64,000 nucleotides of DNA. It comes from Dimorphilus gyrociliatus (taxonomy: Eukaryota; Animalia; Annelida). How positions within the stretch are numbered: position 1 is the stretch's first letter; every line of letters begins with the position of its first letter. This document shows, piece by piece, positions 3,233-6,440 of this stretch. The notes under the pieces are model-generated. The model searched no databases and had not been told where the DNA came from. It worked only from the letters and a program-made list of their open reading frames with translations. Position numbers and translations under genes: made by a program. The stretch lies in assembly GCA_904063045.1 (NCBI GenBank), contig CAJFCJ010000013.1, positions 1,160,156 through 1,224,155 of the forward strand. Reading direction: 5' to 3'.

Positions 3233-3856
3233 ATGCTCTTTTTTTTTACCCCCTTGCATTTTACCATGAATCAAAAGTCTATGGATGCTTAAAAAATCTA
3301 CTTTGTTATTGCGTCCAAATTTTTATTTATGGAATTTACTTCTATTGTTCTTTTGAGAGAATTGCATGCATAATTTTGTTTTTCTAAAATGAGTTAATTA
3401 CGTGTCTTTGTTTTCTAAACAAGTTATTTTCTATTTACATCAGATATTACTAACTGAAGAGGACTAAATAACGCGTATTGTATTTGTTTGTCAATTGGCT
3501 GAAAAATCTCTATCTCTTGACAAGCGTATATACGTCTACTGCAAGATTATATCTAGAAATCCTCTTATTAGTAAATTATTGTCGAGAATGTTATCAATAA
3601 ACAATGAAAAGATATTTTAAACTATAGTATTGCTTTTTCAAAGTAAAAAAAAAAAGTGGCGCGCTTTTTATATGGTACTCTTTGGATCCAAAATTCTGTA
3701 TTTGAGTTCATACTGTGACAGTCTTTAGTTGAACAATATAAAACATAAATGGCGACAGACTGCACACGCGCACTCGCCATATCCTAAAGCCTAAATTAGT
3801 TTAACAGTGGTAATAAGTTCATTTGACACTTCATTTTCTTTTAACAAACTTATAAA

Positions 3857-5364
3857 ATGTCGGAGGAAACTATTAACATATTATTCGTTTCAAAAGGTTT
3901 GTTTTAGATATATATATATATATCAATATATATATATATATATATTGCTTGTTACATTTGCCACGAAAATTAATATTCTAATTTCTATGTTCTATTTTCT
4001 ACAGACGATAAGTTTAGAAGTGTCATTGCTCTTAATAAATTAATGGAGATATGTATATCGTCGTCTACGGTAAGTTGGTATTAAAATAGAATTGTTCTTA
4101 TAACTGTAAATACTCTTTTTCTACGTCAACTCTTTTATTTTTTATGTAGAAGATTTATATTGAAACTCGAGGTGTTGATGTTGCTAAATCAAAAGATTCG
4201 TTTTGTCCTTTTGTAGAAGAAGGAATGAAACAAAATGGACTTTATTTAAAAAGTCAACCACAGCAAGTTTGTAGTTTTATAGTACTTTTTTTTATTTTTG
4301 TCCTTTTTCTTTTTTCATGGGACAAACTACAAACTTAGAATATCATATTTCATTTAAATTCATTTTAAAATTCTTCAGCTTACTAGAGAGGACTTTAATA
4401 ATTTCGACTATATGTTCGCATTCGACAATTATACTTATGAGGCTTGTTTGGCCATTAGAAATTTTACGGTTGAGAAGACGGCCGATACGAAAATACTTGA
4501 TAGTTCTTTTGAAATATTTCGTACGTCTAAAGAACCTTTAACGTTACCGAATCAGCCGAATAATTGTGACGATTCGTTCGACGAAGAAATCAATGAACTT
4601 TGCAGAATGAAGAATCAACTTGAAATGAGCACGAGATCTGATGATGAATTATCAAAGGGAGATAGCGAATGGGAAAATGAAATATCTACAATAAGCTTTG
4701 GTGAGAGCCCCTATTCTAGCGCGAAGAGTATTGTTACAATGGAAGAGGATTTATTCGAAGATATCGAAACTATATTGAATTTATTCGCCGAGAATGACAA
4801 ATTAAAGAAGGCTAAAAACTCTGGTAGCCGTCTAATAGAGGGGAATATTACCGCGTCTCCTCCCGCTAACGATATACAATCGGAAAATGATAGAGAAGAA
4901 GAGGTGGTAAATAATTTGAGAACCAATTCTGATAATGGCGACAATTATGTACGTTTTGTTGATGCAATAAATGGAATCGATGGAAAATCTATGATGGAAG
5001 GCGATAGCTATTCTGATAAAAGCAACTGTTCATTTGACGATAATGATTACTGTACAAGAGCACTTTTATGTCTCTTAACCGCTTACGATAGTCCGGATAT
5101 TCAAACTGATGATTTCGAAATATACGAAAGAAGTAAAGCGGTATGTGTTTTTTTTTCTTCTTTTTCATATAAAATATACAACTTAATAGTATAATCAATT
5201 TGCAACTAATTTCGATAAACAATCTCATATTACAAATTACATAGATGGATTCGGGTCAGGACACTTACGAAGTCATTTCTCGTTGCTGCCTTAGATTCTT
5301 TTATACAACTTTAAGCGGAAAAAAAATCAATTTATTGGATTTTCCTCAAAGCTCAAACTGTTAA
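3857..5364 (+). CDS. Low-molecular-weight protein tyrosine phosphatase-like protein (ACP1 fold), predicted catalytically dead, with large acidic insertion
   Basis: Exons 3857-3896, 4005-4069, 4150-4266, 4379-5140 and 5245-5364 join in phase. Segments MSEETINILFVSKDDKFRSVIAL, GMKQNGLYLKSQPQQLTREDFNNFDYMFAFD, LLTAYD and TYEVISRCCLRFF align by eye with ACP1 SVLFVCLGNICRSPIAE, RQITKEDFATFDYILCMD, LLGSYD and QCVRCCRAF. Confidence 0.8.
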
Positions 5365-5424
5365 AAAGTTGGGGTAAGAATTACAAAAAAAAGAGAAATT
5401 AAATGAAAATAGGGAGTCGGATTT

Positions 5425-5480
5425 ATATATGCATACATACATACATACATACATACATGCATACATACTTGCGTACATAC
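5425..5480. repeat. (TACA)n microsatellite
   Basis: gcatacatacatacatacatacatacatgcatacatac. Confidence 0.9.
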
Positions 5481-6440
5481 AAACAGAGGAAAGTTTCTAA
5501 TACTCAAGTTCTTTACTTGACCGTTTTCTTTTTGTAAAGGATAAACAAAAGATAATAAAAAAGGAAAACAAACAAACAAACAAATAGAAAGTATAGATAT
5601 AAAAAAAAAAAACTAAAAAAAAATAAAATAAAAAAGGATAAAAGATTGATAGAGAGAAGGATGAATAGTTTGATAAATATTTCCCATATAATGTAGTATC
5701 ATTTTGCGTAATTGTATTTACATATAGAAAATATTGTTAGGGACTTTGTTCTTATTGTAAAATTACAAACATCAATGGATTGTATATGATTCTCCCTAGT
5801 CTTTTGAAGATAAAGATTTTTTTTATATGATATTCTTTTTTCATTGATATATATAAATATATATACTGTAACTCTTACTGCATTTACGGTTCTAGATATA
5901 TACATATGCATATACGCATGCTTGGTGTGTCTTTTGTTTCGTACTAGGTGGTTGGTTAGTTATGAATATTCATCAATTAAAAATATAACACATACTGTAC
6001 AAGTTTTTTAAATAAAAATAATTAGTTGAATTATTATTGATATCATTTTCTCTCTTTTTCTCTCTTCCTATATCTCTCACTCTTTATGGACGCTAGATGG
6101 GATAATTATAAATGTCATGATACATATATAAATATGTATACAGTATTTATGAAAATATAAATAGTCTAACATTTTGGAGATAAAGTAGACAAAAACTAGG
6201 CGTTTTCAGGTTAAATTACTCTAGATTATCGAACAGTTGGAGATTATTTTTTTTTATATCGAACATATAAAAAATAGCTATCTCTTATGATTAAGAAATG
6301 GGGAATAACTTTTTATAGAACATACCGTTTCGTTTTTTTTTATTATTATTTTTTTAAGTTCCTGTAAACAAAAGGCCATCTAGTGTCTGTCTTTCGATTC
6401 ACCGCTATTGGTACGTTTATGTAAAACCTATTATCGTTCA

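Follow-up and report, generated by a model that had tools for sequence, protein, structure and literature searches.

A putative pseudophosphatase from the LMW-PTP family with an acidic loop insertion in the annelid Dimorphilus gyrociliatus

Gene structure and expression

The DNA considered here is a stretch of 64,000 nucleotides (nt) from the annelid Dimorphilus gyrociliatus (contig C13, positions 1160156-1224155), referred to below as the window. It contains a gene of five exons on the plus strand (3857-3896, 4005-4069, 4150-4266, 4379-5140 and 5245-5364 in window positions) that is discussed as a candidate pseudophosphatase from the family of protein tyrosine phosphatases with low molecular weight (LMW-PTP). 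A serine stands at the position of the nucleophilic cysteine, and a long acidic insert interrupts the domain. The spliced model is exactly the database record DgyrCDS9526 (367 amino acids, aa), which was used, being equal to the model, in all analyses of the whole protein; the long exon (4379-5140) translates into a sequence that matches part of that record along its whole length with 100% identity. The region is AT-rich eukaryotic DNA with a GC content of about 0.30-0.38. The features of the gene are listed in Table 1.

The gene is real and is transcribed in D. gyrociliatus. A spliced contig of 1408 nt from a public run of 2017 lies on 3820-3894, 4003-4068, 4149-4266, 4379-5139 and 5244-5418 with 0 mismatches and 0 gaps, and therefore the serine codon and the entire insert are present in an independent run. 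The initial annotation of this DNA had proposed splicing of the 5' exons to the acidic exon and had listed four junctions, and the same contig supports all of them. The joints 4069/4150, 4266/4379 and 5140/5245 are GT..AG joints in the contig, and the joint 3896/4005 was deduced from the contiguous contig coordinates, with an ambiguity of 2 nt beside a skipped (TA)n repeat. Since the insert region is single-copy in the D. gyrociliatus genome, the contig is not a retrocopy and is best explained as complementary DNA. The run holds 60% of the words sampled from positions 3700-5500, which is approximately the exon share of that stretch. An unspliced intron or an annotation artefact as the nature of the insert was ruled out by the spliced contig together with the conserved open frame. 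Simple repeats occur within the transcription unit, namely a (TA)n tract in intron 1 (3905-3950) and a (TACA)n-like tract in the 3' untranslated region (UTR) (5428-5470).

Table 1. Features of the studied gene and its plus-strand neighbour in the window
Feature	Position	Strand	Basis
Su(H)/CBF1 (LAG1-DNAbind, BTD, TIG_SUH), single open reading frame (ORF) of 436 aa	1922-3232	+	
5' UTR and exon 1	3820-3896 (UTR from at least 3820; coding 3857-3896)	+	translation, start of spliced contig
Start codon ATG; Ser12 codon TCA in place of the nucleophilic Cys	3857; 3890-3892	+	sequence
Intron 1 (GT..AG), contains (TA)n microsatellite	3897-4004	+	sequence, spliced contig
Exon 2: remaining P-loop D-D-K-F-R18-S19 and helix alpha1	4005-4069	+	translation, spliced contig
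Exon 3: beta2 (IYIETRG) and alpha2; ends SQPQQ, H-x-A-R-Q in active enzymes	4150-4266	+	
Exon 4, first part: alpha3, beta3 and alpha4 of the LMWPc domain (LTREDFNNFDYMFAFDN...)	4379-4477	+	Pfam, AF2 pLDDT 93-96
Exon 4, middle: acidic insert of 194 aa, residues 108-301, alpha4-to-last-strand loop	4478-5059	+	alignment, spliced contig
Islands in the insert, residues 124-139, 198-208, 245-260, 266-278 and 286-301	4526-4573, 4748-4780, 4889-4936, 4952-4990 and 5012-5059	+	conserved with orthologue
Exon 4, last part: final beta strand ALLCLLTAYD (5060-5089); DPYY-loop remnant FEIYE (5114-5128)	5060-5140	+	
Exon 5: C-terminal helix (TYEVISRCCLRFF), stop 5362-5364, 3' UTR running past 5418 into simple repeat	5245-5418	+	

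Family membership and fold

The initial annotation held that the five exons, once rejoined, restore the fold of ACP1/LMW-PTP, and the comparison with known families agrees. DgyrCDS9526 scores 29.4 bits on the Pfam profile LMWPc (PF01451), above the curated cut-off of 23.2 (E 1e-6), its residues 8-111 covering positions 1-104 of the 144 in the profile, and the N-terminal part by itself scores 30.0 bits. An exon-by-exon Pfam scan returned no match, as expected for pieces so short. A profile of 99 bacterial LMW-PTPs detects the N-terminal part and misses the C-terminal one. Sequence matches in the PDB are LMW-PTPs exclusively, the top one being human (6y2v, E 0.0026).

The C-terminal part has its counterpart in the canonical LMW-PTP encoded in the same genome. 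Residues 302-354 (ALLCLLTAYD ... ISRCC) align with exon 4 of that gene (BLASTP, E 1e-6), and the strings LTAYD and ISRCC are common to both proteins. Three introns are common to the two genes in position and phase. Intron 1 of the studied gene interrupts the P-loop in phase 1, at the position of an intron of the canonical gene.

The ESM Atlas model of DgyrCDS9526 matches an LMWPc cluster over residues 5-355 with a template modelling (TM) score of 0.80 (normalised by the 157-aa target). In residues 291-313, which straddle the boundary between the insert and the last strand, a single substitution separates the protein from its orthologue in a related species. Independent support for the fold comes from the match by BLASTP, from the model in the Atlas and from the conservation of residues 291-313.

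AlphaFold2 (AF2) was also run with an alignment, here called A2, of 30 bacterial LMW-PTP rows and three exon translations, the bacterial genes having been gathered by a DNA pattern of the P-loop. MAFFT alignments with bacterial LMW-PTPs or exon fragments usually misplace the last strand into the insert, and only some sets put it on ALLCLLTAYD. The A2 model has a predicted local distance difference test (pLDDT) score of 73-96 in residues 1-104, 94 in residues 301-310 and 85-94 in residues 331-350, and its strands and helices follow the expected order. In the comparison with ACP1 that had been proposed as a check, the model, with its alignment selected to fit, superposes on human LMW-PTP 5pnt with a Z score of 19.0 and a root mean square deviation of 2.5 A (154 of 157 residues aligned, model range 1-351), and its fit to Drosophila DARP and Primo-1 is equally good. 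Foldseek aligned about 100 columns, and VIA-align was needed to bridge the insert. DgyrCDS9526 is thus predicted to adopt the four-stranded alpha/beta fold of LMW-PTP in full, down to the last strand and the C-terminal helix.

The acidic insert

An insertion of about 190 residues, rich in Asp, Glu and Ser, had been placed at about 4465-5045, flanked by the FDY..FD and LLTAYD..RCC segments. Its location between the two segments stands, and its bounds and length are corrected by alignment to those given in Table 1. The insert contains 22 Asp, 22 Glu and 24 Ser (23% Asp and Glu; 35% with Ser included) and has a net charge of -25 and an isoelectric point of 4.1. It is acidic, though not extremely so. 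By charge and hydropathy it belongs on the disordered side, and its pLDDT in the A2 model is below 50 except in two helices of moderate confidence (residues 140-160 and 189-222), in keeping with the large disordered loop that had been suggested. The topology of parallel alpha/beta connections indicates that the insert would leave the fold at the edge opposite the active site. Five islands within the insert are conserved with the orthologue.

The insert has no Pfam domain, no second copy in the D. gyrociliatus genome and no usable look-alike in the Atlas, and its origin from a repeat, a transposon or another gene was rejected on these grounds. As a separate observation, the string GNITASP in the insert (residues 229-235, window 4841-4861) resembles GNICRSP of the canonical P-loop, with a score at chance level. 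A decayed internal duplication of the domain, to which this string and a weak second match pointed, was rejected, with scores of 2.3 and -0.4 bits and no conservation of the string in the orthologue.

Paralogues and gene order

Other members of the family in the D. gyrociliatus genome, namely the canonical gene, a sister paralogue and a divergent copy, were compared exon by exon. The canonical LMW-PTP has four exons on the minus strand, 14.5 kb upstream of the studied gene (region C13:1149250-1149818). It reads MKILFVCLGNICRS ... DPYY ... ISRCC, has the P-loop CLGNICRS and is likely to be the source of the local duplicates. The divergent LMW-PTP-like copy lies on another contig, also on the minus strand (region C19:3631881-3632458). 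Its P-loop reads C-E-N-N-T-T-Q-S, so that Cys is kept and Arg is replaced by Gln, and AYPYF replaces DPYY.

The sister paralogue is likewise a Ser-type gene. It lies on the minus strand of contig C13 at about 1156606-1157452, about 2.7 kb before the start of the window and about 7 kb upstream of the studied gene, and Su(H) lies between the two. Its P-loop, S-K-E-N-V-C-R-S, is identical in the related species, and it has VDEIYD where the canonical protein has VDPYYE. Like the studied gene, it has a TCN serine codon followed by Lys and an acidic residue, EIY for DPY, a five-exon layout with the additional intron, a loop insertion at the corresponding place and Su(H) at its flank. Unlike that of the studied gene, which is long and acidic, the insert of the sister is short (about 20 residues, KQKKSRFFSVRRKKKTPKP) and basic. 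The sister gene evolves slowly and the studied gene faster. Because these derived characters are common to both genes, they imply that the Cys-to-Ser change is older than the duplication that gave rise to the two Ser-type genes.

The orthologue and selection

Among 1.84 billion representatives, an exhaustive search with HMMER gave only DgyrCDS9526 itself and two ORF fragments, both of which belong to one genomic locus of a related species. This locus was assembled from runs SRR23372228, SRR23372229, SRR23372216 and SRR31984834. A word-based protein search with the N-terminal 111 residues found nothing, and the same kind of search with exon 4 of the sister gene found solely a fragment from the related species. 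The statement that no such architecture was known for the family therefore stands in part: the HMMER search yielded a single orthologous locus that shares the insertion, but the sister Ser-type paralogue carries a basic insert in the same loop.

The gene order is the same in both species, with the Ser-type paralogue on the minus strand followed by Su(H) and the studied gene or its orthologue on the plus strand (contig L009 in the related species). The comparison implies that both Ser-type genes are older than the split of the two species. The orthologue has all five exons, the P-loop S-K-E-D-N-Y-R-S, the insert and a shorter C-terminal tail. It has an additional GT..AG intron of 61 nt within the insert (L009:10522-10582). 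At that place the coding sequence of D. gyrociliatus is longer by about 15 residues, a difference that suggests the gain or loss of an intron or exonisation within the insert.

The four regions compared between the species evolve at different rates. Su(H) is 95% identical in amino acids, with a ratio of nonsynonymous to synonymous differences per site (pN/pS) of 0.037 (pS 0.79, near saturation), and the sister paralogue is 86.5% identical with a pN/pS of 0.11. In the studied gene the core is 67% identical (pN/pS 0.35, 95% confidence interval (CI) 0.24-0.49) and the insert is 42% identical (pN/pS 0.60, 95% CI 0.48-0.79). Core and insert both appear to be constrained, the insert weakly.

These rates bear on the possibility that the gene is a decaying duplicate, transcribed and functionless, that is drifting toward a pseudogene and whose insert is neutral junk in a tolerant loop. 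The much faster evolution of the studied gene relative to the sister and Su(H), the low identity of the insert, its indels, the intron found in one species only and the failure to find relatives beyond one related species all fit. Nevertheless, in both species the frame, every splice site and the insert remain open, though synonymous sites are near saturation, the pN/pS CIs lie below 1 for core and insert, conserved islands lie within the insert, and the stretch at residues 291-313 is nearly unchanged. With frames that are open and under constraint in both species, and with synonymous sites nearly saturated between them, neutral decay is unlikely.

Catalytic residues

The P-loop of the studied protein reads S12-K-D-D-K-F-R18-S19 where active enzymes have C-L-G-N-I-C-R-S, as the initial annotation had seen in noting the change of the nucleophilic Cys to Ser and the retention of Arg. 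Ser12 (TCA) occupies the place of the nucleophile in the C-X5-R-S/T motif of active enzymes. The cysteine-based mechanism would be lost and the protein would therefore be a pseudophosphatase. Arg18 and Ser19 are retained in the studied gene, the orthologue and the sister paralogue.

Other residues around the active site have changed as well. Aligned with human LMW-PTP and with the worm's canonical protein, the P-loop has Asp14 and Asp15 in place of Gly-Asn. Mutagenesis of bovine LMW-PTP showed that Asn15, Ser43 and His72 together hold the P-loop in active enzymes. The positions of bovine Asn15, Ser43 (DSxG) and His72 (H-x-A-R-Q) are occupied by Asp, Thr (in IETRG) and Ser (in KSQPQQ), whereas the sister retains Asn15, Cys17, the Ser of DSxG and His72. 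The DPYY loop reads FEIYE. The columns that hold Asp and Pro in at least 90% of the A2 rows fall on Glu321 and Ile322, in a short alignment whose register is somewhat uncertain. As aligned, the nucleophile, the usual general acid and the P-loop scaffold are all altered, and of the catalytic apparatus only Arg18 and Ser19 are left.

Cys-to-Ser mutants of two Drosophila members of the family, Primo-1 C9S and DARP C7S, are inactive (PMC7772506). DARP C7S crystallised with a phosphate ion in its P-loop, and Cys-to-Ser LMW-PTP mutants still bind phosphate (PMC7772506). These mutants are relevant to a second alternative, which takes up the phospho-substrate binding suggested in the initial annotation and in which the protein is a phospho-substrate trap or reader: the Ser pocket would bind phosphotyrosine or phosphoarginine without hydrolysis, competing with canonical LMW-PTP or directing it, and the acidic arm would be regulatory. 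The preservation of Arg18 and Ser19 in the gene, its orthologue and the sister, although the core is just 67% identical between species, argues for such a role. It is opposed by the replacement of both Gly14 and Asn15 by Asp, which places negative charge at the anion site, by the loss in the studied copy of the Asn15/Ser43/His72 network that the sister keeps, and by the alteration of the aromatic DPYY wall to FEIYE. Canonical binding of phosphate or of a phospho-substrate is doubtful in view of the two Asp residues and the lost support network, while the retained Arg-Ser argues the opposite way. The trap is a tentative and rather improbable explanation.

The serine itself might still be chemically active, either by slowly hydrolysing a different substrate or by accepting a phosphoryl group and becoming stably phosphorylated at Ser12. 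In PDB entry 4kk4, YwlE C7S has a phosphorylated active-site serine, which indicates that a serine in this place can accept a phosphoryl group, and the studied protein has Glu in the general-acid column. Such chemistry is very unlikely, however, given that the Cys-to-Ser change abolished turnover in the LMW-PTPs tested (PMC7772506) and that the residues shaping the P-loop are lost in the studied copy; the sister is the better candidate.

Interpretation

On balance, we consider it somewhat probable that the studied gene is a maintained, noncatalytic paralogue of LMW-PTP (a pseudophosphatase) with a disordered acidic arm. It descends from an active family, has lost a catalytic residue, gives a spliced transcript and has an intact orthologue with pN/pS CIs below 1. 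In this pseudophosphatase, the folded core would serve as a stable platform that acts without catalysis, the binding of phosphate in the canonical manner would probably be weakened, and the acidic arm, with its five short conserved islands and two possible helices, might bind partners.

The gene probably arose in steps, as the derived characters common to the two Ser-type genes indicate. The canonical gene would have been duplicated, and the duplicate would have acquired the change of Cys12 to Ser (TGY to TCN), Lys at P-loop position 2 with an acidic residue at position 3, Glu in place of the general-acid Asp (EIY for DPY), one extra intron and an insertion in the alpha4-to-last-strand loop. 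This ancestral Ser-type duplicate would then have been copied again around Su(H). One copy would have remained compact, basic and slowly evolving. The studied copy would have evolved faster, lost the Asn15/Ser43/His72 network and extended the loop to its 194 acidic residues, which are mostly of low model confidence.

Several points weigh against the reading of the gene as a maintained pseudophosphatase with a complete fold. The C-terminal part alone is undetected by Pfam, and AF2 from the single sequence gives a pLDDT of 33. The A2 alignment was picked for placing the last strand on ALLCLLTAYD, which makes the AF2 model a consistency check and not an independent test. No library type is recorded for the run from which the spliced contig comes. 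The pN/pS values are rough, given the near saturation of synonymous sites. The presumed inactivity follows by analogy from Cys-to-Ser mutants of LMW-PTPs, and anion binding might still be important, as every Ser-type copy strictly retains Arg18 and Ser19. The proposed binding of partners by the acidic arm is purely conjectural.

A broader proposal concerns both of the Ser-type genes that flank Su(H). They might form an undescribed functional class of animal LMW-PTP derivatives, in which the basic copy would bind phosphate or a phospho-residue or would accept a phosphoryl group, and the acidic copy would act as its partner or regulator through the oppositely charged inserts, the two together modulating tyrosine or arginine phospho-signalling in dinophilid worms. 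This proposal is speculative, and we regard it as quite improbable.

Relation to known phosphatases and significance

Pseudoenzymes are known for most phosphatase folds. The studied protein resembles canonical LMW-PTP/ACP1 (human 5pnt, bovine 1phr) in its fold, its LMWPc match, Arg18 and Ser19, and the FDY..FD, LTAYD and ISRCC segments. It differs from canonical LMW-PTP in Ser12, the two Asp residues, the changed equivalents of Ser43 and His72, FEIYE and the extra intron, and in its length (367 aa compared with about 155), the insert occupying the alpha4-to-last-strand loop.

In retaining a phosphatase fold under selection after the loss of a catalytic residue, the gene is similar to STYX, MK-STYX and the D2 domains of receptor protein tyrosine phosphatases. 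In MK-STYX, too, Ser replaces the nucleophilic Cys (PMC2873733). Unlike STYX and the D2 domains, the studied gene belongs to a different fold class (class II LMW-PTP). A pseudophosphatase within the LMW-PTP family has already been proposed in a fungus: Ltp1 of Cryptococcus neoformans is described as lacking the whole motif (PMC13216928), whereas the studied gene keeps Ser..Arg-Ser. A large acidic insert within the domain is a feature of the studied gene and is absent from STYX, MK-STYX, the D2 domains and Ltp1.

Two further groups bear comparison. Drosophila Primo-1 and DARP had at one time been called pseudophosphatases but were then shown to be active (PMC7772506). Long conserved insertions also occur in kinetoplastid ArsC-like proteins of the LMW-PTP fold, which cluster with ArsC reductases (PMC2175518). 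They are not described as lacking Cys, and they are likened to the studied gene by general description only. No description was found of an animal LMW-PTP in which Ser replaces Cys or which carries a large acidic insert, in a literature coverage that is incomplete and does not prove absence, and no well-supported natural pseudoenzyme was found described for the animal LMW-PTP family.

The practical reach of the finding is limited because the gene is known from D. gyrociliatus and one related species only and its partners are so far conjectural. Its interest lies in the natural series that one compact genome provides, which consists of an active-type gene, a conserved Cys-to-Ser copy and a more degraded copy with a large loop insert. 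From this series one could learn how the fold of an enzyme becomes a noncatalytic module and how a disordered arm grows from a loop.

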